Source: Schizochytrium sp. TIO01 (Eukaryota > Protista > Bigyra: Labyrinthulomycetes). Taken from it: DNA of 64,000 bases. Below, in pieces: positions 8,001-35,805 of this stretch. Location: contig SMSO01000035.1 of the NCBI GenBank assembly GCA_004764695.1, forward strand, positions 2,294,001-2,358,000, given 5' to 3'. Below the pieces are notes generated by a model. That model was not told where the DNA came from. It saw only the letters and a list, made by a program, of their open reading frames with translations, and searched no databases. Every line of letters begins with the position of its first letter. Position 1 is the first letter of the stretch. Made by a program: the position numbers and the translations under genes.

Positions 8001-10192
8001 GAATAAACCGTATATGAAAAGTATAAGGAATGAAGTCGGAAGATTGCCGCATCCCTTACTCGTTTCCAAAGAAAGCTTTGCAGATATGGCAGCGGTCCCT
8101 CACGTGGGTAAGGTGCAATCTAAACGAAGTAAAGCCACGATTGCAAGAAAAAAAAATGGCAGCTGCAGTGGACCTGGGTAAGTAAGACAGAAGCCACTTT
8201 AAATAAAAGCTGTGATTAGAGATCGCAAAAACTTTGGTAAAATGAAAGGGCGTGTTCGACGCCTGCCTTATGGGGCGGTTCCTCATGCATTTAACACACA
8301 AGTTGGGTGAGCTCTTTTGCCCGAATTTACAAAACTCATCAATTCGCAAACTTCAGTTCTTATTGGTGGAGTACCCTCTTTATATTATTCTGATTTTATA
8401 CTATCTCTAGCAATAGTTTGCATGACGTCCTGCGTCGCGACATGAACGAAACGACATGAGGAATCGACGGACATCTGTGGAACTATTTCATTGCCAGCCA
8501 TGAATTGAATTCATAGTCAAATATCCACACTGAACATTGCAGACTTAGTCACATTCTCTGAATTTGGACTAGTAGTCATCCAAAAGTAAGCACGGCTCCT
8601 GGAGAGGTCTAAGAAAATGCCAGGAGTAAGGTCATATGGAGTTCCTGGAGTACATATCTAGATACCATCCTCTCTGGCATATCTGCACCTTGAAGGCCTT
8701 AGTTGATTGACAGGACGTGAGAAAGAGATGACCCAATAAACTGCTGCAGTCTATTTACATGACTTATGAAAGAATAGACTATGCCGCCGAGTACAAGAGG
8801 TTGCCCTACTTCAGTTATTAACTTTATTCAATTTCTAGTAGAAGTTTGAAAAGATTCCTTTCAAGTAAAACATATGAAAACTCCCACGTCAAGAAAATAT
8901 TCTGAACAAAAGCAGGACAAAACCCATCTATAAGAAGGTTTTCTAACCCAGGCTTCATGGCGCGGTACTCCGGATCGGCATGAGATTTATTTTCGTCATC
9001 TCCGAAATAAGTGATTGAGTATGATTTAAAAAAATAAATCATCTTCTTTCATTTCTTGGACTCTTTTGGCTAATGTACTACATAGCTCCGATCGATAACT
9101 TCGCACTTTCTCTTCCTACACAAGTATGATGCCTTTTTTTCTTTATTTTTGGCCCTTAGGTTCCTCTACATTTATACTAGTACTATTTGCAGAGGAAACA
9201 AGATGAAGAAAAGAAGAAGCAATCTTTATTTCTTCCCCTCGAGAAACTCGTTTGTCACCCCCACTTTTTCGGTCCTCTTCTTCGCCCTGTTCCGAAGAAA
9301 ACCACAGCAGCAGTCTACTCACCTGCAATGCTTTTTGCTTCTCTGTAGTCGTCCTCACGAGTGCCTAGCTTCTGTTCCGAAGCATTTTCGTGCTTCACGT
9401 TGATCGAGAATTCTCGCCAGATTACTTGTGTTGGCTGGTGCGGTGCCGTGAAGGAGTGCTGCTGCTTCTTTTCCTATGTATGTATGTATCTGAGGCGGCC
9501 ATTTCCTTACCGACTACTGCTGTCATTCTTGAAAACAGTAGGGTCGAAGTACCGTTTCCCAATAGTGTCCTTTGGCTTGTTTTTATTTTAAAAACTATAA
9601 TAAGTATAAAAGCATTATTCTATTTTTTTTATTTCCCCCCATTTTGAGAGTACGATAGGTACTAATTACTTAGGTACTTACTTACCTACTACATAGTCTT
9701 TTTCTTTTTTTTTTTAAACTGACAAAAAAGTCAGGAATCTTTTAAACTGAGGTGCCTTGGCTTGTGAAGTCCTAAAGCTCCGAGGTCCATGATCGATGCA
9801 AATGACGTCTTTGAGTAACACGAGGTTCCTACGACAGCGAAGGAATCTATACGTAGAGTGTCGTACTTCCCTGCGCCGGATTGGAATAGTCTACAGGAAT
9901 AAAACATTCTTAGCAAGCCTCAAACAACGTCTAGGAACGATAAGGTGACAAGATAGAAGGAAGAAGCGGGAGGCTGGTTGGACCTATTTGTTTCGCCTAG
10001 GGATACCTTAGGCACTTGTTGTCACAGGAAGAAGCTAGCCAGGCAGGAAGCTCTGTAGGCAAACCCTCAACAACATAACTGAGACAAAACTGCAACTCAA
10101 AGCCTCCACAAAAATCTCAAGGAGAGCAAAACCCCAACTATCATATAATCAGAAAGAAAGTCTACATCAACAGGAGCTTTAAGAAAATCAAC

Positions 10193-10369
10193 ATGCTTGA
10201 ACGCTCCTCAAGCTCCACGACAAGTTTCGTTGGGACAAGAAAACTGGTGCGTCGAGGAGAGTCACCACAGGATGCAAGGCAGACCAAAGCCCCTGCATAT
10301 TTCAGACCTCGGCTCAATCATAACGAGGTCCTCCCAACATACGTCGCAAAAGATGGCCAAGAGAAATAA
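10193..10369 (+). CDS. Micropeptide family member 1, 58 aa (MLERSSSSTTSFVGTRKLVRRGESPQDARQTKAPAYFRPRLNHNEVLPTYVAKDGQEK)
   Basis: Hand-translated ATG..TAA in an A-rich context (aatcaacATG). Shares RKLVRxG with the 14593 copy and the RPRLxxxxVLPxY motif with three other sORFs. Confidence 0.7.
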   Translation: MLERSSSSTTSFVGTRKLVRRGESPQDARQTKAPAYFRPRLNHNEVLPTYVAKDGQEK

Positions 10370-11359
10370 GATTAGAACAGCCGAGACCTCTTGTTTCATA
10401 TCATTTAACTTTCTTGCCTGGAAAGTACTAGATGTTTCGCTCCCTTCTTTTGACATATAGCGTGAGGGAGTTGAACACATATTCTTCGTCATTTTTGAAA
10501 CCATTTTTGCCTGTGCTATTTACCAGCACTATTAAGAGCAACTGCTCTCCTCCTCAACTCTGATCCCTGCGAAGCGCTCGCTAACACCTAAATGCCATTA
10601 TCAGTCTTACTATTGGTGGTGCGTGAACCCCTTTAACTTTTAATTCGTGATAGCTTTGGTCCTATAATAACCTTTGACTTTGGTTTCGCTTGAATCCTGT
10701 GTACCCTCTTCATGTGTCTGTAGGAGACAACCCTCCTAGAGTTTAAATATGATGCCATTATTATAGATTATGTAAATTTTCTAATCCTAGAAGGCTTTCC
10801 TATGCTGCATCATAATTTTGAGACTATGCCTTTAAGCAATATTCTGATACGGACAGACATTGTTTCAATGATATCGCTTATTGCATTTACAAGAGCTATG
10901 CTTCTTCTCAGAACATATTGCTAATCTTAATATTGCTCATTTAAGTTGTTTAAATAAGCATGACATAGTAGACAAATTATAGTAAATCTCTTCCAACATA
11001 CTGGCTTAATGTCTTGAACAATGAGGTGAGATATTAAGATTAGAATAAGTTTACATATTCGCACTTGCGTTTTAAATCGCTGTTGCAATTTAAGTTCTAT
11101 TAATATTTGGGTTCACAAGCTTAGCACTAGAACAAGCCACCCTGTTTGAAGTTTCTTTCAAATTGATTAGTCTAACTTTAAACAACAACAAAACAAGAAC
11201 TTACAATTAAGGGTTTATTCTTTACGTTTCTGTCAGTTCCTAGATATTTCGAACCTCGAGTTGATACACATATAAGAGCAATACCAACTTATGAAGCTAT
11301 AGTTTGAGAGATGGCATGACAGTCTAATTAGGATTAAGATAGTGAATTTTAATTTATAT

Positions 11360-11362
<3 letters not shown>

Positions 11363-11398
<36 letters not shown>

Positions 11399-11475
11399 AC
11401 AAACAAACAAACAAACAAACAAACAAACAAACAAACAAACAAACAAACAAACAAACAAACAAACAAACAAACAAA
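11363..11475 (+). repeat. Compound microsatellite (CAG)11(CAAA)20
   Basis: Directly visible; accounts for the spurious ORFs 11233-11466 and 11342-11530. Confidence 0.97.
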
Positions 11476-12038
11476 CGAAAAGAGAAATCAGGCGTTGAAG
11501 AAATTGAAATTCTCAACTCTTTCTTTGTAAGAATATGATTATCAGCAAGGTAGCACTAACTTGTGAGAATAGTCATTGGAACTAGCACGCATTTTTGTCA
11601 GAAGAGGAACCACATACGCCATGATCAAGACACATTTGGTATTTCTTTTCGCTAAGCAAATCCAGTGACCCAGGTGACCAGGTGACGCGGGTGCTACTGG
11701 AAGTGTCTCAAATTTTAATTCAGTGACCAGTAAAATCTCGGACCAGGCCATGAGCTAAACATCTAATAGTACTCAAGGCTCCAAAGAATTCGATTTGGCA
11801 ACACCAACAAATCTAAAACTTTAAAAGGTACGGTAGCCAAATCGAAAGATTCGTTCTTAAAGTTCACTGGACGCACACTGTGGCGATGGGGAGAATTAAA
11901 GTATTTCTTAAAGCTTTCAAACCAGTATTACGATACCGCAACATGATGCACGACTGTGCTTATGCGAGACTCAATAAGCTGCAGCATTCTGTTTAAAAGA
12001 GGCTACTTTAAGTTAGTTTCATTCGGGGACTGTGACAT

Positions 12039-12053
12039 CCCCCCCCCCCCCCC
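12039..12053. repeat. Poly-C tract (15 nt; G15 on minus strand)
   Basis: Directly visible. Confidence 0.95.
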
Positions 12054-12938
12054 AACCAGTCTTTGGTGCAATCATCTAACTATCGGTGGTTGAGTGAAGA
12101 CTCAAATTCCTCTTCAAAGCTATGTGAAAGCCAGCAAGTATTGCACAGGCTGACGTTTCAGAGTAGTTATGAATGAAAGCAATACGGTTGACGTTTCACG
12201 GTAGTAGAGCAGGTGCACACCCGCGCACCTGAACACTTGCAACTGACATTAGAATTGGATACCTTCTTTTCTTTTTTTCTGGGTTACTATAGTAGTTATC
12301 TATCGCAGCATAAGGGTGGATATAAAATACGCAAAACTTTGAAAAACTCAACTCGGATGAAAAGGTACTGGTTGAGATGAAGGTTTTTATGTCTGGCTGA
12401 GCTAAGCAAATCGTCTGGATAAGGCACAAATAAGAAATAATTAAAGCAGCTTGAGGTACACGGCTTCATATCATTCGGTGACATTTAAAAACAAATGAAA
12501 TTGCCTCTACCATTAGAAGTCTCCAGTTGTCACAAGGCAATCCCATCACGCAAGCTGGATTCGGTATTCTAAAGCTACAGCTTTCGAAAACCCCGCTTAG
12601 TCGAGATTGACAAGTGTCATCATAGATTACGTTTTAAATGGCTAAATACGCGTTTCGGAGGAGTTTCCCACGAATAGTTGCACGAAAGACATTTTCAAAG
12701 TGTGAATGGATTCATTTGATATATTGATATATAACCGCAGCATTTGATAGCTTCAAGGGGTGGGACTCAATGAAACGCAACAAACAAGCAACCAAACCTG
12801 CAACATATGTTTTGGGAACATAGATTCTCCGTCGGAGATCTGAAGCAGGCTCCGCTCTGCAGCGTATAGAAGGTCTTCACGAATCATCATTGCGAGGTGC
12901 GATCTTGTGAAACCAACTACGCCCTGTCGCAAGTTAAA

Positions 12939-13121
12939 ATGTGCAAGACGACCATTCCACAAGTGAAGCAAACCATCAAGACCAGTATACATTCAATAGA
13001 TTTTAGTATTCCAGGAAATGAGCCAAGGCCTATGCCACAAGCACCACACCAATACCGTCCTCATCGCCCAAGGCTTCTAACGACCGGGGTGCTACCAATT
13101 TATCAACCAAGCCCTGTATAA
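12939..13121 (+). CDS. Micropeptide family member 2, 60 aa (MCKTTIPQ...PHRPRLLTTGVLPIYQPSPV)
   Basis: ATG in an aaaATG context within track ORF 12897-13121. C-terminal RPRLLTTGVLPIYQ matches the family motif. Confidence 0.7.
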   Translation: MCKTTIPQVKQTIKTSIHSIDFSIPGNEPRPMPQAPHQYRPHRPRLLTTGVLPIYQPSPV

Positions 13122-14592
13122 TTTGAGCCTAGATATTTATTTCTTATTAGTTTTTCTTCATGAAGACATATTTAAGCGCATCTAGTTGCCTTCGCATAAC
13201 ATTTTTGCGCTGAGTAACGATTAACGATTCACGGATTTAATACAAACAATTTAGTTTCCTGATTTTTCAAATAATGATGTACTGATAGTTCAGCTTTGTC
13301 GCTGGTGCAGTTGATTAAACGTCGCACATCACCATAAATCTCTCCATCATCTGTCACTTGGGAATGTAATCTTATGCTCCTAGATGCGAACTTCTCCAAA
13401 GTGATGTAGTCTCTCCTTGCATTTGTAGTTGAAGGAATCTTAGCAATAATAACCCGTTGTTTCTCTTGGCTGATTAATGCTTTGACGACGAATTCTGCAG
13501 TGATTCTACAGTCGCTGTCGCAAAAGAATATCAAGACTCGGAGAGATTTTCTATGAAACATCACATATCCCCTTGTCACATTTCTCACATTTCTCGAGAG
13601 GATCTGTCTTCATTTTTGACAAGCAGACAACAAACTCGCATGAGGCTGTGGTTCTTACTTCTCATAATGTCATCGACAGGATTTGCTGTGAGTGTATAAA
13701 GTCCGTCGCAAGTCAGTCTAAGTTTAATATACCCTTAAATCTTTCTAAAACTTAATTTTTCTATATGTGAATACGAAAATGTTGGTCGCTTTACCGACAT
13801 CTATATCAAGCGATAGATTGATTAAGCAATGGATAAAGCTCAGAAATAAGAGGGAATTTTGATTCCAACCAGAGCAACTAAATATGTAGCAATGTAATTG
13901 AGAGGGCCAAATGTTATGATGTGTTCCCAGCTTTTTTACGTGAACGAACCTGTGTGTCTAATTTTAATCAGTAAACATCGACTTCGTAGTTTTGCTCTTC
14001 CCATCAAGATCTTATTCTCGGCAAACTTTTCAATGGCTACAGCCAACGCACACATCCTAAGCAAGTGATAATTTCTCATACATGGGTTCGACGTCTTTTG
14101 CAGTAATCTGTGTATGTCTGTCGCAAGTTTTATCATGCCACGAAGATTTCAAATTAATGAGTATTTGAGATAGTCATGAGAATACTTGGGTTGCATTATT
14201 TCTTGGTCATTTGAAATTTGTTGGTGAAGACTGTCATCTAGCAAGATCACTAGGAAGCAAACAACTCAAAATGAACATTCCAATGCACATATTATGCAAG
14301 GTTATCTCTTGCACTTATTTCGCTTATAAAACTTAAATTATATAGTGTTATCGCATTGAATTGCTACACTATATCATCAGGTTGCATGGTTGTACAAGAT
14401 AACTAAAAGAAGCTGTAGAAAATTTGGCCCTTGTCAGCCTATCTAATTGATTTTAAAATCTAAGATACAGTAGTATATGTTTTTCAATCTCGCTGATAAA
14501 CACTGTTAAGAGAGTGACAGTGGAAGAAAACCTCGGATCTTCTTCTTCAAAAATGGGAATGTAAGGTCTGACTGAGGACTTGGGTTTTCATC

Positions 14593-14761
14593 TCAAGGTT
14601 TCGTTTGATTTTGAAAAGTAGGTAATACATCGACAGTTTCGAGCCGAGGACGAGGCTGTGCGCTGTTCGGTGAGCGTGGCGATTGAACTCCTCCTGGACG
14701 AACTAGTTTTCGTGGGGTATCTGGCGATGCAGAAAGATCAGCATTATCTCCGGTCACTCAT
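14593..14761 (-). pseudogene. Micropeptide family member 3, frameshifted or mis-assembled near the start (MSD/GDNADLSASPDTPRKLVRPGGVQSPRSPNSAQPRPRLETVDVLPTFQNQTKP)
   Basis: caaaATG at 14761 reads MSDRR-stop. Deleting one base in GACCGGA joins it to an open frame (GTG 14757 to TGA 14593) containing SASPDT, RKLVRPG and RPRLETVDVLPTFQ. Confidence 0.6.
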
Positions 14762-15726
14762 TTTGTATGAATATTGCTGCTATACAAAGACCTCTTCTAA
14801 TTTCCTCAAATCACCAAGAAATTGGGTTTTGCTTTGCGGTGGGGAAGATTTGTTGACATAGCTTGTACCTGGGAATATAATCAGAGCGCGTGGCTTGCGC
14901 GTGGAATACCCATATCTGCTATGCTTACTTAGTAGTATTCGTTTTCTTCCCATAAGTTGAATCCATTTCTACTTATATATATATAAATGACTTTTCTTTT
15001 TAAGGTAAGAGGTAGGCACTCAACACAGATGGTTTCACTTCCCGCAAAGTACGCACCGCAGCAGACTACAATATTAGTTTCTTCTCGGACAAAGGCGCGC
15101 GTGCCTCCGTGATTGTCGACAAGGGTTCTGCCCTGGTCCATTCCTATACATACAGGAGCAAACCTCAGGTGTATAAAGATTTAAATTTTAAAGTAAAACT
15201 CAATTCCCAGGATGGTTAAGAGAAGATTAAAACAGTTCTTCCTGACAAAAATGTTATGTATGCTGATCTTGATGAATCTAGCTATTAAACCAGTTACGCC
15301 TGTTTAAAGTCTTGAGGTTGCGGAAGTAGTTGCAGAAGTAGAAATAAGTTTGTGAAATTGAAAATTGGATTCTTCATCATCAAAGAAAGCGTGGAATGAG
15401 CATATGCTTCCTTTCACGCCACTCTAGTCGCTGAAAGTATGCTTATCAGCGCTGTTCACTCAAATGTGTAAAGACTAAGGAGAAAAGAATACCGAGAGAA
15501 AAACAGGAAAAAAAAGGAATACCTTGTGACTTGTAAAACTGGAAACGGATTTGTTGGATTTTTTCTTTTCTTCATTTTCTTCTCTAGAATAGGTGAAGGT
15601 AGTAGCTTACACTCCACATTCCATTGGCTTTTACACTACTATCGACGAACCATGACAGGGTTATTGTGCAGGTATAGAGGTGCATAAACCAATGCAGTTT
15701 TCGTCGGACGTTTGACCCGATGCTTC

Positions 15727-15753
15727 TCTCTTGCTTCTCTTGCTTCTCTTGCT
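15727..15753 (+). repeat. Tandem 9-mer (TCTCTTGCT)3
   Basis: Directly visible. Confidence 0.9.
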
Positions 15754-17248
15754 TCTTGTTGTGAAGCCAGCAAGTGCACATTCTCACGTCCGGGGAATGG
15801 ATTCTCTATTTTGGCTAGCAAAAACAAGACTCTTACAAGCACAGTTGCCCCCACTCATAATAAGAAAGGAAGATCAAAGTTCATACTCAAGACAAAGTAA
15901 ACCAATACAGGGTTGCGTCGATTGTATATTTTATCTAATCGAATTCGAAATTTAGCCTAGCCAAAAAAGGAAGCCCAATTTTCTACTTAGATCAAGAAAC
16001 CCCACAAGACAAGTATGATAAGATAACTATGCAAGAAGATATATAAAAGCATGTTTTTTAGCTTGTGGAATGTTGAGAGTACTTTTCTACGAGTTTTTTT
16101 GTTAATGTAAGTCAACGTCTAGCGCTTGCATTGGACAGTTGTATCAAACAAAGAGAATATAAATTGCGCTTCCGCCTGGCCAGGGCAGGGAAACCACCAG
16201 GTTAGTATTTGGTTGAAAGGAATGAGATTCCAATCGTTCTGTAGTTCATTGTGCCACGCGCACAGAGTAAAACTCCCAGCAAGAGCCCTTATGTCTAAAG
16301 AGAAGCAACCAAAATACTGATATTAAGCTTATATCAAAACTTTGGTTGCAAAAGTATGATCTGCACAAAGTTTGCATAGATGAAAGCTAAATAGTTTTCT
16401 TAATAATATGTGAAGCACAATGCTAAGTTCAAGCTAAAGAGTAATGAAGCGCTCCCTATGCTTGTTGGCTGGCTGGGTATCTATAGTAAAAGATAGTACT
16501 ATGGTGCGCTGCGGTAAAACGAAAATAGCACTGCTATACAATGAGTATATCTAATGACTAGTGTCACACATCTTTTTTGCCTGTTTTTACCAGTCTTACA
16601 AGGTTTGAATGAGTATCTGTTTTAAAAATTAAGTAATTCTAAGTATTAGCAAGCCACAGATCTGTGTGCCGTGAGAGCGCCTGCAAACATAAGGCCCTCA
16701 TCTTCAGCTGTTGAATATAATTGTCACAGTAAATAAACTTGCGCCCTTTTTTAAATTTTCTCTTTCAGTGCTTGAGTAGCTATATAAAGGGAGGGGCATA
16801 CATTTTGCTCTGTGTTTCCCTGTTTGTTGTTATTTAATTCTAAAAGGACAGGTGACACCTTTGTCTTCATTTCGTGTAAACATGCACATCGTGATTATAA
16901 ATATAGTACTCTAGACCTGAAAAGGCAACGACAGAAATGAGTAGACCCAGGGCACATTACAACACAGTATACTATGGTATTCTCAGGCATTCGATGTGCG
17001 GAGAGACAGGTTTTTAGGTCAATAATCCAAGATTTCATCCAAGGTCTGGCTTTTCCAACTACCTTACTTTCTTGATACTTGAATTGTGGTTGTAGCTGGT
17101 GTTTTTGCATTTTCCCCCGTCCTATTTTAAAAAGGGTCGTCACCCGGTTCTCTGCTTATTCGTTGATATTTGCTACAGTTAATTAAATGTGACGAGAAAA
17201 AAAAAGTCACTAAGAAATGGATTCGCAGGAAGGGACTGTGTGGTTTCT

Positions 17249-17512
17249 GAAGCTAGGGGAGGGCTACCCTCCTCCAAAAATCACCCTACCATGAAGCTAC
17301 TTGCATGAAGCTGTATGATTTGTGGAGACAAGAAATAAGCATGCAGGACATTCTCGGCAAGGCCTGGTAGTGTGTTGCTTAACGTCCCAGCTGGGCTGTG
17401 GATCCTTCAAAGAAGCTAGAAGCTCGTGACATAGAAGCTAAGCCAAGCTACTCACCAATCCATTTTCGTTCTTCCATGTTGACAGCTTATCAGAATAAAA
17501 AAGCAGGAAGCT
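17249..17512 (+). promoter_or_regulatory. Cluster of seven GAAGCT hexamers upstream of micropeptide member 4
   Basis: GAAGCT at 17249, 17293, 17307, 17412, 17419, 17434 and 17507. AAGAAGCTAG and GCAGGAAGCT also occur upstream of member 1 (10029, 10043). Confidence 0.4.
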
Positions 17513-17602
17513 GATGGGTTTCAAATCCCAAACGCCAACAACGCGCCAACGCAGACCCAGACAAGAGCTCTAGGAAAATATAACCCTTATAAGAAACCTA
17601 TC

Positions 17603-17758
17603 ATGACAGCAAGTCTTGCCGCAGTATCAGCATCTGAGGATACCTCCCCTCCGACAAATAATGCGGACCAAGTGAGAAAAGCGCCTCGATCAAGACCATT
17701 CCGTGCGCGTGCTCAAACGAGTGATGTATTGCCTGCATACGTCCCATCACAGCGATAA
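17603..17758 (+). CDS. Micropeptide family member 4, 51 aa (MTASLAAVSASEDTSPPTNNADQVRKAPRSRPFRARAQTSDVLPAYVPSQR)
   Basis: Hand-translated ATG..TAA. SASEDT resembles SASPDT of member 3, and RARAQTSDVLPAYV matches the family motif. Confidence 0.7.
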   Translation: MTASLAAVSASEDTSPPTNNADQVRKAPRSRPFRARAQTSDVLPAYVPSQR

Positions 17759-20700
17759 ACTTCGATCGTCTTCGCTTCGAAAGCCTGAGGCTTTGCGCAC
17801 ATTGAAATTGTGAATATTTCTCGAAGTCATATCGATGGAGACGGCGGAGTGAGTGCCAACTATTATATTATAATTATTTACTGCAGAAACCTTACCAATT
17901 GTGAGCTCTGCTCTGCTCTTAAATTGTACCTACATAAACAAAAATAGAAATGAAATTTAACACTACTTAAACGATGTGATATTTTTTTTAGAAGTATTGC
18001 CATATCTCTGAGAGGCACTAATTCGAGTTATTCCTGAAATTTGTATTTTGAAGGTGTCTGGGATAGACCTTGCACCTTCGGATGGATGTTGTGTCTCTGC
18101 ACATCCTCCGCTTGTCTGCCAAGCTGACGCTTACTTTATTCCGCATATTAGCACGACTTAAATCAACGCTCAAAAGACCGTGATGTAATATTTAGTTATG
18201 TTAAAGCTGTGGAGCCTCGATCAAAGTTCGAGGAACAAATCGAACGTTGTCTTAGTTCGATTTGTTGGATGCTACGTCCGTCTTAAACAGCTAGAGTTTG
18301 TGTGGCAAGATGATCTTAAAAGCTTGAAGAATATATAAAGAAGCATGGTTGCGGCTACTTCACATCCTCTTCTATTTAATTATATCATTCTCATACTTAC
18401 TATGAACACTGATGGGCAATTTCCAAATGCGGCTTCTCAAAATCTGCTGTTATCGTTCTCTTAGAGTGTTTTCCAATTTCGTGTAAACTCTTGCAATATC
18501 TTAAACGCAGAATATTTTTTAAGGTGAAGCAAAGTAAATACTAAACACACGATTAATATCTAATAACTGACATAGCTTCACAATATGCACATTGCCAATT
18601 TTGCGTTGAAAAACTGAAGCTCAAGGCACCTTCATGTAGATTTCCAAGCTCGAAGCATTTTGAAAAGCGTAGAATTCTCAAGCTAAAGGCTGACTGAAAA
18701 GGTTAAGAATAATGGTGTTTAACTAAGCGAAAAAAATAAAGAAAAGGAAAACATATTATTTAGGAGTTGCTGATCTACTAGGGAAACTCAGCCATTTCTT
18801 GATGATGCTTTACAGGTATCATGATGGGTGAGGTCTTCATGTCGATCCTCAATCATATGCTATAGCTTTAGTTTGCTGTATCAAGTTATTGTACTCGCGT
18901 ACGCACGTACTTGAGTAAAAGAAACGTTTAGCCTCGAGAGCCATCAATTAGATCATATCTATATTCTTTAGTTAAAGATATCAAAGAAACGATTCATTCG
19001 CAAGAACCCTTTATTTAATTTAACTTTATAAGCAATTGATGTGCGCACGTTGTCAATAAGAACTAGAAGCACACGCAAATATAGTACGATAAGAGTCGGT
19101 GACAGTTCTCTATAAAACCCAGAGCATAAAAATGAGACTCGCATGAATTTCACTGAAGAAACAAACAAAGCAAACAGCGTGTGTGTATTTCCATCGAGTA
19201 CTGAAACATATGACCAAATTCGAACAAAGGTTCGCATTTCTTGGCCCACGAGTTTAAACAAGTTATTCAAACATCAAAACGTTTTCAAAGGCCTTGCTAT
19301 AGTTGCGCTAAACTCCTCGTATTGTCAAAATTATGTTAGTATTACAATTATCAAGAGCTCAAATCAGATTTGCTCAAGGGAAAACGAGCGAAGAGCAAGC
19401 CTTAATGACAACACTTCAATTAAAAAAAAAAACTCCGCTCACTAATCAGATTGTTGGTCTTAAAGTGGTTTCTATGAATTTTGTATGATGAGCAGCGACC
19501 TAAGAAAGTCAATTTATTTCCTACAGATGTTTATTAGAGTGAGGTCCACTAGTTTCTTTAGATTTCAGTTTCATGCTAATTATGTCAGGGGGATGGTTCT
19601 GACTATCAATTTATCTCATCATTAACAAAAAACGTGGTCTTTATTTGAATCCTTTCATACTTCAGAAGCCTATGCAACTTCTAACGAATTGTTTCACAGT
19701 GAAAACACAAGTTATAAGTGATGGAGTGTGCACGAAAGTCTCGGATTCCCTGCACAAAGATTGTTCCAATTTACAAGATGTTAGTGTTACCGTGTGCGGG
19801 CTCTTAGAGTCAGTTTGCGGTCTGTGTAATAACTTGTCTTACTTAGACTTTCATGAACAAACTCAACGATCAATGTTCTTGACCAGAAGGCACAAAGGAC
19901 AAATGGAATATTAGTTCCCGATTGCATAAATAGTTATATTGCCTTATCATTAAGGATGGCTTGTCAATTAATTCAATCGATTTTCAATTTCTTTCTTTGC
20001 TTTGTGCAGATTGTGATCTAGATTTTGGTTTTTCCATATCGTTTGATGAAGATCCTCGCTCGTAACTTGTTATTTTGGCTGGTCGCCAACACCTCCTTTG
20101 GCCTCTGATTTGAAGCATGTGCAAGTTTAGTCCAGCTGTGGGAGACAGCATGAAGATACTTCCCTCTTTCATGACGATCTGTTCAAGTATAGTACTCTTT
20201 CTCTATCGACGATTCTGCTGCTCAAATGCGTTTCTAGACCTAAAATTGATATTGCGATACTAATTGTCGAATGCTTGGTTTGGAAGAGCAGTCCGTTTAT
20301 AGCTTAGCCTGAACACCATATTCCATTTGTCAATCGGTCGTTGCTAACATATTATAATAATTTTGTGTTATTGTTTTCCCCTTTCCATAAAAAGGCGAAA
20401 TAGGATATCAATTCAAGATTATTATTATTAAATATATATATATACCGAAAGCGAATTTTTTTCTGCCTTTAGTTCGCAAAGTGAAAGAGGAGCAGGACTT
20501 GAATATAAAGCTGTTATTCTTAGATTGCCTAGAGTGTAATTTTAACCACATCCATTAACCTCACAGTTTTTTGTTTTTGTTTTTTAAATTTTAATATTAA
20601 AAAAAATATAAGTCATGAGTCCAGCTTCAAATAAACCTCGCCATGAAGCGTAGCACCGTCTTATTTCTTAGCCATCTAATGGGATATTGAGGCTTGCAAC

Positions 20701-27251: not shown

Positions 27252-28925
27252 ATGAGGGCCTGGGAACATGGTGGCAGCAGCAGCAGTCTTAATACTTTAA
27301 TCTCATCGTCTACACCGGCAACAACATTGACAATGGCAAGCAGCACAGGAGTTGGCGGATTGAGGCGCCATCAGGATCTCAGCAGAGGACTAGAACCAGA
27401 AACCGAAGCTACTGATCTTGATGCCAAAGAAGCTCGCGATGAGGATAGCATCGATGCGCGAGGTAATCAAGAGTTCTGCCCAAATAGTGCGCAGAAGAAC
27501 CTTGGACGCTCACATAGTTTCAAAGTTAGCGAACATCACCATCGGCACCATAATAGCCCTGGCGCCTCGCAGGAAGCTGTGGACGAAGTAATTGCAATGA
27601 GGAGGAGAATGATGAAGAGAAGAAATAGCAGCAGGCTCGAACAACAACCAATTCGTATACTTGGTTTTCTTGCTGAAGGAAGGTCGGGTCGTATCGCAGT
27701 TGCAACACGCTATTCTGACGCCTGGGAAGCCGAAGACTCCAAAAAGGCTGATGAAGAGTTAGTTGATCAGCAATCAATTATACTTCAACCTAATGATTTG
27801 GTGTCAGCAACTCAACGACTTTCACTGTTGTCTACCTCTCCAAAAGGAGCACCTTCCTCGTCTTCACTATTAGCAATGAGAAAGGTAGATCGTCCTCCGC
27901 CGGTTAATACTTCAATTACCTCAAATTCCGACAATAACATCCCCAAAAGCGATACCGCGGCGATCACTAACATTAGTGATGTGCAGGTCTTTAAATTGAT
28001 GCCAGGTGCGATACCTAAATCTCGCTCTGACAAACTTTTGCAGATAACTGGTTCAAACGTTTCCCTTGAACTCTTGCCACAAGAGAACAGCCGTGTTCAA
28101 GAGAAATGTCCCTTTGCACTTAAGATCATGGATCTTGAGCGCAAGGATACAACTGGAGCTTCGTCAACTGAAGCATACGAGAATGAAATTTCTATTATGC
28201 GTCGTCTTGCTACTGTGGAGTCCGCAAGCCCATTCATGGTTGATTTTCTATTCGCCTCATACAGCCACGATAGGGTTTACATAGGCATGGGGCTTTGCCT
28301 CGGTGGCGACCTCTTCACTCTCATCCGTCAGGAGGCTTTTTCGCCTAAGGAGATCCTTTTCTTTGCCGTTGAGATCAGCCTCGCATTACAGCATTTACAT
28401 AATAACCGCATTATCCACGGAGACCTCAAACCTGAAAATGTTATGCTGACAAACGAGGGACATGTTAAAATTGTGGATTTTGGTTTATCTGTTCAATTAG
28501 ATGTGAATCGTCATTTTAACCCGGAAACAGGAAGGTTAGAGGTAGTTTCGCATTCGGGCACCCTCGCGTACTGTGCCCCAGAAGTCCTTGCTCGGTTTCC
28601 ACATAGCTTTGAGTCTGACTGGTGGAGCTATGGAGTGATTTTATATGAAATGCTTTGCCATTGTCTACCTTGGATGGGCAGTGACGATGATGAAACGTGT
28701 GCCATGATTTGCACTGCCCCTCTGAAGCCTCCAGAGGGATTGGATTATGTCGAACCTCGTTGCTTCAGCTTCATATCGCAGCTCCTTTGCAAAAGTCCTG
28801 AGAAGCGTATAGGCTTTGAAGGAGGCTTGGAGTCAATTAAACAGCATGAGTTCTTCAAATCTGTCAACTGGGACCATGCAAAGAATTTGCGGTACCGGCC
28901 GCCATTCAAATTGCTGAGCGGTTAG
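27252..28925 (+). CDS. AGC-like Ser/Thr protein kinase (non-RD, with a large N-lobe insertion)
   Basis: Motifs FALKIM, GGDLF, HGDLKPEN, DFG, GTLAYCAPE, DWWSYG and an AGC-type tail HEFFKSVNW...PPF. Confidence 0.9.
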   Translation: MRAWEHGGSSSSLNTLISSSTPATTLTMASSTGVGGLRRHQDLSRGLEPETEATDLDAKEARDEDSIDARGNQEFCPNSAQKNLGRSHSFKVSEHHHRHHNSPGASQEAVDEVIAMRRRMMKRRNSSRLEQQPIRILGFLAEGRSGRIAVATRYSDAWEAEDSKKADEELVDQQSIILQPNDLVSATQRLSLLSTSPKGAPSSSSLLAMRKVDRPPPVNTSITSNSDNNIPKSDTAAITNISDVQVFKLMPGAIPKSRSDKLLQITGSNVSLELLPQENSRVQEKCPFALKIMDLERKDTTGASSTEAYENEISIMRRLATVESASPFMVDFLFASYSHDRVYIGMGLCLGGDLFTLIRQEAFSPKEILFFAVEISLALQHLHNNRIIHGDLKPENVMLTNEGHVKIVDFGLSVQLDVNRHFNPETGRLEVVSHSGTLAYCAPEVLARFPHSFESDWWSYGVILYEMLCHCLPWMGSDDDETCAMICTAPLKPPEGLDYVEPRCFSFISQLLCKSPEKRIGFEGGLESIKQHEFFKSVNWDHAKNLRYRPPFKLLSG

Positions 28926-34593: not shown

Positions 34594-35805
34594 ATGACAG
34601 ATGAAGATAAACCAAAGCGTTTTCGACTTGTCCCGGGAGATCCACTAAGAGTACAAACAAGCTCTCATCAACCATTGAACATTGTTCGTCTTGAAGATAG
34701 AAAGGACTCACGATTGTTTTTAGGCCAGGACCTGAAATATTGTACTGCAGAACGAATTGTGTCGCTGGTTGAGGGAGGATGGACTTCACAGGAATCCATT
34801 AAACGCGCCCTTAAATTTAAGGCGTACGATGGTGATGTCATTCTGTGCGCTGCGCCAAAATCTGGCGAGGGAATCATCCTGGCCATGCTTCAGCTTCTTG
34901 CTCTCGGTGAAAACAGTGTTGACGCAAATGGAAAGCGTACTGCAGAAGGCGAGTATTATCCAATTCCTTTCATTGAAAACAAAGGCTATGATGCGAATCC
35001 TCGTGCGTTGGATGAGCTGCAGCCCGGAGTTTTGAGATTGTACAAGTCCCACATGAGTGCTTTTGCTGTTCGTGATAAAGTGCGCAGCGAGGGTCGCTTT
35101 ATTACCATTATTCGTGACCCCAAGGATTATCGATTGGGCTTTTTCAGATGCCTGGACAGACTCTACGAGGAGGAGCGTAAGGGCAATTCGTATGCTACGT
35201 CATTCTCTGCTCGCTACAATGTGGATGAATTCGCCAAAGTCAAACCAATCCTCACCCATGTGAATCAGGAGAGGCCTACTTATGAGGAGAATGTTGTGGA
35301 GTGGATGTCTTTGCGTGATGAGAGCAACGTACTTGTGCTGTTCTATGAAGACATAATTCATGATACGCGGTCAGTTCTAGATCAACTGTGTAGTTTTGTA
35401 AACATTGATGCCTCTACATCACTACGCAAAGCAATCCTTATGCACACCAACTTTACAAAGATGCACGACACATATGGCCCAATGCATGAATTGAGTTGTG
35501 AGGAAGCTGATGTGAAAGTTGGCCAGGCGGTCAACCGCTTTGGTTTTGATGCAAATCTCGCCATGAACCAGCTCTGGGTAATGGCCGTTAAATCTGTCAA
35601 TCCACAATGGCGTGACTATAGCTTGTTCTACACTGGCATCACTGAAAGGCCGTTTCCCTTTGAGTACAAAGATATGCCCGATGCGGAGCAAGACTTCCTT
35701 TGCGCAGATCTCAAAGAGATGTTCCTTTCTTGTTTTAGCAGGTTTCGGTCTAACTCCACTTCCTCAAGTCAGCTACCGCAAAACCGTTTCTCTGTGTGGA
35801 AGTAG
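34594..35805 (+). CDS. Sulfotransferase-domain protein (degenerate PAPS-binding motifs)
   Basis: DVILCAAPKSG (5'-PSB loop), YKSH, IIRDPKD (3'-PB), NVLVLFYED. Confidence 0.75.
   Translation: MTDEDKPKRFRLVPGDPLRVQTSSHQPLNIVRLEDRKDSRLFLGQDLKYCTAERIVSLVEGGWTSQESIKRALKFKAYDGDVILCAAPKSGEGIILAMLQLLALGENSVDANGKRTAEGEYYPIPFIENKGYDANPRALDELQPGVLRLYKSHMSAFAVRDKVRSEGRFITIIRDPKDYRLGFFRCLDRLYEEERKGNSYATSFSARYNVDEFAKVKPILTHVNQERPTYEENVVEWMSLRDESNVLVLFYEDIIHDTRSVLDQLCSFVNIDASTSLRKAILMHTNFTKMHDTYGPMHELSCEEADVKVGQAVNRFGFDANLAMNQLWVMAVKSVNPQWRDYSLFYTGITERPFPFEYKDMPDAEQDFLCADLKEMFLSCFSRFRSNSTSSSQLPQNRFSVWK

Follow-up and report, generated by a model that had tools for sequence, protein, structure and literature searches.

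The stretch at about 4.6 to 27.2 kb of a 64,000-nucleotide (nt) region of the Schizochytrium sp. TIO01 genome (contig SMSO01000035.1, positions 2,294,001 to 2,358,000; here called the window) looks like a gene desert, and it raises the question of whether four small open reading frames (sORFs) within it are genes and how their products might act. Our analyses indicated that these sORFs very probably belong to a real, translated gene family. A first-pass annotation, made from the sequence alone, had described them as paralogous micropeptides ending in a common motif, and all four were recovered at 10193-10369 (+), 12939-13121 (+), 14593-14757 (-), and 17603-17758 (+); they are referred to below as W1 to W4. 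Rereading of the sequence showed that the motif strings quoted at that time, and the secondary matches RKLVRRG/RKLVRPG and SASEDT/SASPDT, were correct. The ORFs were present as described, but two of the starts were not secure, as W3 has no ATG in the assembly and the start of W2 is uncertain. W1 has 58 codons plus a stop, opens at the first ATG after an upstream element, and carries H in the motif where other copies carry T. W2 has up to 60 codons and an intact motif, with no upstream element, and the ORF listing starts this frame at a GTG at 12897. W4 has 51 codons plus a stop.

The shared motif was unlikely to have arisen by chance. When the 64 kb were translated in all six frames, the strict pattern R.R.{5}VLP.[YF] had exactly four matches, all at 10.2 to 17.8 kb; shuffling the window 200 times with a first-order Markov model gave a mean of 0.01 matches and at most 1. 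The VLP.[YF] part alone was found seven times in the window (2.3 expected), and R.R was present at the fixed distance in four of these seven. No DNA-level repeat between the four copies was detected by MAFFT alignment of the units with their flanks or by a repeat search of 8 to 32 kb.

The profile scan proposed with the first-pass annotation was performed on this genome, a 64-Mb assembly of 37 contigs in which C34 is the contig that holds the window. With a profile built from the four window copies alone, seven additional copies were detected outside the window, with per-genome E values of 2.8e-4 to 3.2e-3. Five of the seven form a second tandem cluster at C33:1572079-1582218, where neighboring copies are separated by about 2 kb, except for 4 kb ahead of the last one, and one copy is on the strand opposite to the other four; this stretch of about 10 kb has 39 to 43% GC and no long ORFs. 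The other two are dispersed single copies, one at C24:2451936 and one at C30:8476536. Immediately downstream of the latter lies a 420-nt block that has a second copy, 84% identical, at a distance of 3.8 kb (C30:8473107-8473526 and 8476873-8477282), and the sORF itself is outside this repeat. A second-round profile made from 11 sequences added four weaker candidates with E values of 0.02 to 0.23, at C30:8710959, C30:8542895, C30:1833830, and C32:702653, the last of which has an internal TGA. In every copy a stop codon is found 1 to 18 codons past the motif, mostly 3 to 8, and the start Met aligns across copies. Three of the C33 copies have 40 to 54 codons and start with M-x-P-[KR]-[VF]-V-R-[RQ], in agreement with the KLVRR patch noted earlier in the window copies. 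These results indicated that the family has at least 11 copies, in two old tandem clusters at a spacing of about 2 kb and as dispersed copies; it is probably restricted to this lineage.

Comparison of the copies by codon position indicated the level at which the motif is maintained. Over 16 codons around the motif in the 11 copies, the mean pairwise nucleotide identity was 0.63 at the first codon position, 0.66 at the second, and 0.30 at the third, and identical motif residues shared a codon in only 30% of pairs. As identity was high at positions 1 and 2 and low at position 3, selection acts on the protein. Synonymous sites are saturated while the peptide sequence is held, a state that old paralogues under purifying selection on a peptide should show and a DNA or RNA element should not. 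The earlier proposals of paralogous small coding genes under protein-level selection, and of codons that differ among copies while the motif is kept, were both supported by this pattern. Differences between strains pointed in the same direction. The sequencing runs mapped to the window (see below) differed from it at three codons, with S4R and R29Q in W4 and P15A in W3; these changes are all nonsynonymous and lie in the variable N-terminal part, and no substitutions were present in the motif. A further seven changes between strains were observed in about 410 nt of 3' untranslated region (UTR). The strain variation, although small in number, was consistent with a drifting body and a fixed tail.

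The family proteins are predicted to be intrinsically disordered, basic, and hydrophilic, with lengths of about 40 to 60 amino acids. Isoelectric points ranged from 7.9 to 11.7 and grand averages of hydropathicity from -0.1 to -1.0, and an AlphaFold2 model computed with the 11-sequence alignment had no secondary structure (mean predicted local distance difference test score, 68; predicted template modeling score, 0.16). In accordance with the earlier statement that these peptides have no signal peptide, a composition count, made without a dedicated signal-peptide predictor, detected no hydrophobic N terminus or membrane segment in the members, with at most 8 hydrophobic residues per 12-residue window. 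Column counts for 14 members, numbered from the T of the motif as position 0, were 14 for R at -5, 11 for P at -4, 14 for R at -3, 11 for L at -2, and 12 for T, followed by 9 for D or E at +2, 11 for V at +3, 14 for both L at +4 and P at +5, and 9 for Y at +7, where F (4 members) and A (1 member) also occur. The family probably functions through this C-terminal motif. The relevant segment would be the 13 residues R-P-R-L-x-T-x-[DE]-V-L-P-x-[YF], placed 1 to 18 residues before the stop, while the N-terminal part may drift freely apart from a [KR][LFV]VRR patch kept in some copies.

Transcription of the window copies was examined with assembled contigs from public sequencing runs. Runs with 20 to 49 Mb of contigs that held 12 to 28% of the sequence words of 10000-18000 were guessed to be RNA, and runs with 63 to 66 Mb of contigs that held 69 to 81% of these words were presumed to be genomic. 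The contigs of four probable RNA runs from four studies (X1, X2, X3, and X5) were placed on 12300-18299. Over W4, contigs were found at 17576-17989 in X1 (depth, 1878), 17552-17915 in X3 (829), and 17533-17954 in X2 (15); over W3, they were found at 14416-14657 in X1 (312), 14416-14805 in X3 (87), 14428-14820 in X2 (15), and 14490-14818 in X5 (14). The W3 RNA thus extends over 14416-14820 in pieces of 242 to 393 nt, with the minus strand assigned from the ORF and the upstream element, and the W4 RNA extends over 17533-17989 in pieces of 364 to 422 nt, with an inferred plus strand. W2 was touched by a single low-depth contig (12665-13032; depth, 2.9; run X5). Contigs between W3 and W4 had depths of 2 to 10, and 12300-13700 and 16600-17500 were empty in X1 to X3. 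This patchy depth, spanning several hundred-fold, is RNA-like and unlike genomic DNA. Discrete short RNAs of about 240 to 420 nt were detected for two of the three copies in the mapped stretch, W3 and W4. The depth over W4 differed about 100-fold between studies (1878 versus 15), which hints at regulated expression, contig depth being a poor measure of it. Low-depth (2 to 10) contigs were also present in the spacers around W3 at 13738-14293 and 14866-16598, the other spacers being empty; these could reflect pervasive or read-through transcription or further small genes.

The same contigs clarified the start of W3. In the window sequence the W3 motif frame opens with GTG, and the ATG at 14761-14759, with which the sORF would extend over 14593-14761 (-), is parted from this frame by an extra base at 14752 and so lies one base out of frame. 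The base at 14752 was absent from the contigs of X2, X3, and X5, and dropping it brings the ATG in frame to give a 55-amino-acid ORF. Two gene-called proteins, P0001 and P0002, are both encoded on one 14-kb Logan contig: P0001 is W3 with an ATG start and 55 amino acids, and P0002 is the W4 protein with S4R. Because the RNA contigs and P0001 are without the base at 14752, W3 is intact in other strains. The extra base, which lies in a CC run, was introduced by an error of assembly or else marks a frameshift particular to this strain.

Examination of the upstream sequences revealed a recurring element. Among the 8-mers in the 300 nt preceding the starts, GCAAACCC was present in 5 of the 11 copies and AGCAAAAC in 5 of 11. 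The loose pattern GCAAA(A)CCC was present at -53 to -164 in 8 of 11, where the window background of 0.34 per kb on each strand would give about 0.13 in 400 nt. The W1 element, of the GCAAAACCCC type, lies at 10126-10138 (+), 67 nt before the ATG. The W3 element, GCAAAACCCAAT, at 14821-14832 (-), stops one base short of 14820, where the outermost contig ends, and the variant W4 element, TCAAATCCCAAAC, at 17521-17533 (+), ends at the outermost contig start, 17533. Similar GCAAA(A/T)CC(C) strings at 402, 42905 (-), and 57626 of the window precede the ATG of ordinary genes by 40 to 110 nt. GCAAA(A)CCC is thus a candidate transcription-start element that the organism probably uses in general and not for this family in particular. 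No ATG was found between the 5' ends of the contigs and the sORF starts, so a scanning ribosome reaches the sORF first. Each unit would accordingly be a single exon, with GCAAA(A)CCC at the transcript start, a 5' UTR of about 50 to 130 nt with no AUG, the sORF, and a 3' UTR of about 200 nt.

The surrounding desert contained little else. Its largest ORF has at most 220 codons, and its GC content is 36 to 42%, compared with 42 to 48% in most of the gene-rich window. No tRNA or Rfam matches were detected in the desert, and its three longest ORFs had no Pfam match. Microsatellites at 11233-11530, a (CAAA)n-like tract beside a (CAA/CAG)n run, give rise to spurious poly-Q and poly-C ORFs. Downstream, a kinase gene (Pkinase) is present at 27252-28925, 9.5 kb from W4, and a 403-amino-acid ORF at 34594-35805 (+) matches PF00685, the cytosolic sulfotransferases (E, 1.6e-18). 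The genes flanking the second cluster encode a ceramidase and a DUF4378 protein, and no gene family shared by the neighborhoods of both clusters was found. As the C33 cluster sits between these two genes, the kinase downstream of W4 is not a conserved neighbor.

Three other accounts of the loci were weighed. The sORFs might be terminal exons of larger spliced genes running across the desert; the lack of an ATG in the W3 assembly sequence, the unclear start of W2, and the low-depth contigs between units at 13738-14293 and 14866-16598 would be explained in this way. However, no splice joints were found in the four runs over 12300-18299, where the discrete contigs of about 240 to 420 nt were 30 to 400 times deeper than neighboring pieces, and the W3 ATG is restored in other strains. 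An all-against-all blastp search of 1,465 sORFs from the cluster regions detected no second conserved coding block, and the start Met is aligned across copies and is the first AUG of the transcripts. A larger spliced gene is consequently very unlikely, in agreement with the first-pass view that these are separate small genes. Even less probable are noncoding RNA genes or decayed repeat or transposon relics in which the ORFs and the motif are incidental. The RNAs are indeed short and abundant and arise from a low-GC, ORF-poor region, but identity is kept at codon positions 1 and 2 and falls to the random level at position 3, the copies form no DNA repeat and match no Rfam family, and a stop always follows within 18 codons of the motif.

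Precursors of processed or secreted peptides, either like ribosomally synthesized and posttranslationally modified peptides or pheromone-like, with the tail as the recognition or core sequence, were thought to be scarcely more probable than spliced genes. In favor of this account, the genes are clustered, small, and multicopy, with one conserved and one variable segment, and a sulfotransferase gene lies 17 kb away. Against this, the members have no signal peptide or hydrophobic segment (as judged with no dedicated predictor), the two clusters have no modifying enzyme in common, and the motif is not flanked by dibasic processing sites.

Searches for relatives outside this genome suggested that the family may be narrowly distributed. 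Hidden Markov model (HMM) searches of 5.8 and 1.84 billion proteins recovered the strain variants of W3 and W4 described above, P0001 and P0002, and, apart from these, only three translated repeats. When ten sequences were looked up exactly in a 15-billion-sequence collection, no annotated copy was found, only the two strain variants being gene called, on the one Logan contig. These HMM and exact look-up results, in which the members were not found in the public protein collections searched, agreed with the suggestion that standard annotation would miss such genes. Pfam searches with 11 members at E values of up to 10 gave no real match and one chance Msg2_C hit, and the best ESM Atlas scores, 0.78 to 0.81, were at chance level. 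The literature on the peptide strings and on small ORFs in Aurantiochytrium contained nothing relevant that we could find. Two degenerate DNA patterns gave 0 and 27 hits in a metagenome collection; the 27 were consistent with chance, as most were in high-GC bacterial DNA, none were clustered, and none had the sORF layout. A scan of a viral collection gave one hit, a DUF2442 protein matching PF10387.

The arrangement of the conserved tail suggested how it might work. A folded partner would dock at the motif or modify it. Arg at -5 and -3 in 14/14 copies matches the Akt/PKB-type pattern R-x-R-x-x-[ST] (non-Pro at +1), and the acceptor position holds T in 12/14 and H or I in the other two; as both Arg residues are invariant and T is nearly so, the tail can be read as a kinase site. 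On this reading, the most likely one, the T would accept phosphate from a basophilic kinase of the AGC type (Akt/S6K/SGK-like), and the hydrophobic and aromatic residues next to it would form an anchor; these abundant proteins might then serve as phospho-regulated substrates, decoys, or adaptors, and copies without T might be nonphosphorylatable, pseudosubstrate-like variants. An AGC-type phosphosite is a tentative assignment, somewhat short of an even chance, and the same guarded standing applies to the fuller proposal that the motif both docks and accepts phosphate in a basophilic kinase pathway, T-less members being pseudosubstrate-like. The combination of an Akt site with a WW ligand, as put forward in the first-pass annotation, would also fit the pattern of residues. 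Other motif functions, taken together, appear slightly less likely than the kinase site.

Among these, the genes may be real and the tail may act otherwise, as an L-P-x-Y ligand of a WW domain (a ubiquitin ligase adaptor or decoy), as a destruction box (D-box)-like RxxL degron, or as a docking site for a phosphatase or another protein, with T being no phospho-switch. This is rather unlikely, although it draws on the facts that L-P is invariant and T is not, that R-x-x-L is present in 11 of 14 copies, and that the genome holds at least 150 WW-domain matches, including a group-I-looking tandem at C30:150429-150623. Group-I WW domains need the Tyr hydroxyl, and binding is weakened when Y is replaced; of 14 family members, 4 have F and 1 has A at the aromatic position. 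Two WW-HECT ligases were identified (C31:8769501-8772380 and C35:1951943-1955365); both have an fn3-WW-HECT arrangement, and their WW domains carry Y at the group-I His position; no canonical C2-WW-HECT ligase of the NEDD4/Rsp5 type was seen. The D-box of the anaphase-promoting complex (R-x-x-L-x-x-[ILV]-x-N) was rejected, since R1 and L4 were present in 11/14 copies but position 7 was V in only 5/14 and position 9 was never N. Canonical 14-3-3 mode I/II sites, MAPK D-motifs, cyclin RxL, PP1 RVxF, calcineurin LxVP, PY-NLS, and PTS2 were dropped on the basis of their consensus patterns. A tail acting as a WW ligand, degron, or docking site would also leave unexplained why R at -3 is invariant and T nearly so.

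Taken as a whole, the best explanation is that these are expressed genes for disordered microproteins that act via the tail motif, and we give it about an even chance, as a compromise between the high odds for a translated family acting through its tail and the lower odds for the phosphosite. Several observations weigh against it. No orthologue outside the species group was found by protein family, HMM, or exact look-up searches, small ORFs being rarely annotated, and the conservation seen is that among paralogues only. The RNA label of the runs is a guess, and the contigs reveal neither strand nor true ends; their placement took in W2 to W4 among the 11 copies, with W2 barely covered. Position 0 is H in W1, I in the copy at C33:1582099, and A in one weak candidate; because T is replaced in the two solid copies, phosphorylation cannot be essential to every member. 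Many members also have an acidic residue at -1, and E or D at this position is not favored by many basophilic kinases or in canonical 14-3-3 sites.

The expressed microprotein family has implications beyond this locus. Part of what looks empty in this gene-dense protist genome is made up of small genes in arrays, which annotation overlooks. The family provides a clean natural case of function concentrated in a short linear motif, with 13 residues held while the rest drifts, and it is suited to the finding of partners by peptide pull-down. If the motif is an AGC kinase site, it would offer an entry into the growth signaling of thraustochytrids, which are used for docosahexaenoic acid production.

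Comparison with known systems produced likenesses of different kinds. The string RPRLKTVxVLPxY, found by the DNA pattern scans, occurs in the N termini of phage and bacterial DUF2442 proteins, several of the metagenome hits being among them. In DUF2442, however, this is the N-terminal strand of a folded domain of 70 to 100 amino acids that continues with RLxLxFxDG, whereas the family peptides end right after the motif, and none of 11 family members matched PF10387; this resemblance is due to chance and was selected by the search pattern. The resemblance to [LP]PxY ligands of WW domains consists of L-P-x-Y in 9 of 14 copies in a genome rich in WW domains, but F or A replaces Y in the other five. 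In human PRAS40, Thr246 is phosphorylated by Akt, and the site then binds 14-3-3. Residues 240 to 248 of that protein are RPRLNT(246)SDF, ten residues from the C terminus (PMC2708931). Most copies similarly have R-P-R-L-x-T followed by S or V, D or E, and a hydrophobic residue near the C terminus. The homology does not extend past about nine residues, and PRAS40 is a 256-amino-acid metazoan protein with other motifs, whereas the family consists of orphans of 40 to 60 amino acids in which T is not universal and the site is a sequence pattern only; no homology to the PRAS40 (AKT1S1) domain was detected, the 11 members having no Pfam match bar the one chance hit. It is conceivable, if improbable, that these thraustochytrid-specific amplified microproteins are phospho-switchable decoys or pseudosubstrates for Akt/S6K-type growth signaling with a minimal PRAS40-like tail, the T-bearing copies being switchable and the T-less copies constitutive, and that they tune nutrient or lipid accumulation responses. 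Proteins of the PKI, ENSA/ARPP19, and inhibitor-1 type, which are heat-stable regulators of kinases and phosphatases, are short, hydrophilic, and disordered, with their activity in one substrate-like linear motif. The family proteins are likewise short and disordered, and some have a nonphosphorylatable, pseudosubstrate-like acceptor position, but there is no sequence kinship, and the family is tandem and multicopy with fast-drifting N termini, traits not known from those regulators. Overall, these comparisons indicated that the microprotein family is new, with no named relatives, and that precedents exist for a short disordered protein acting via one linear motif.

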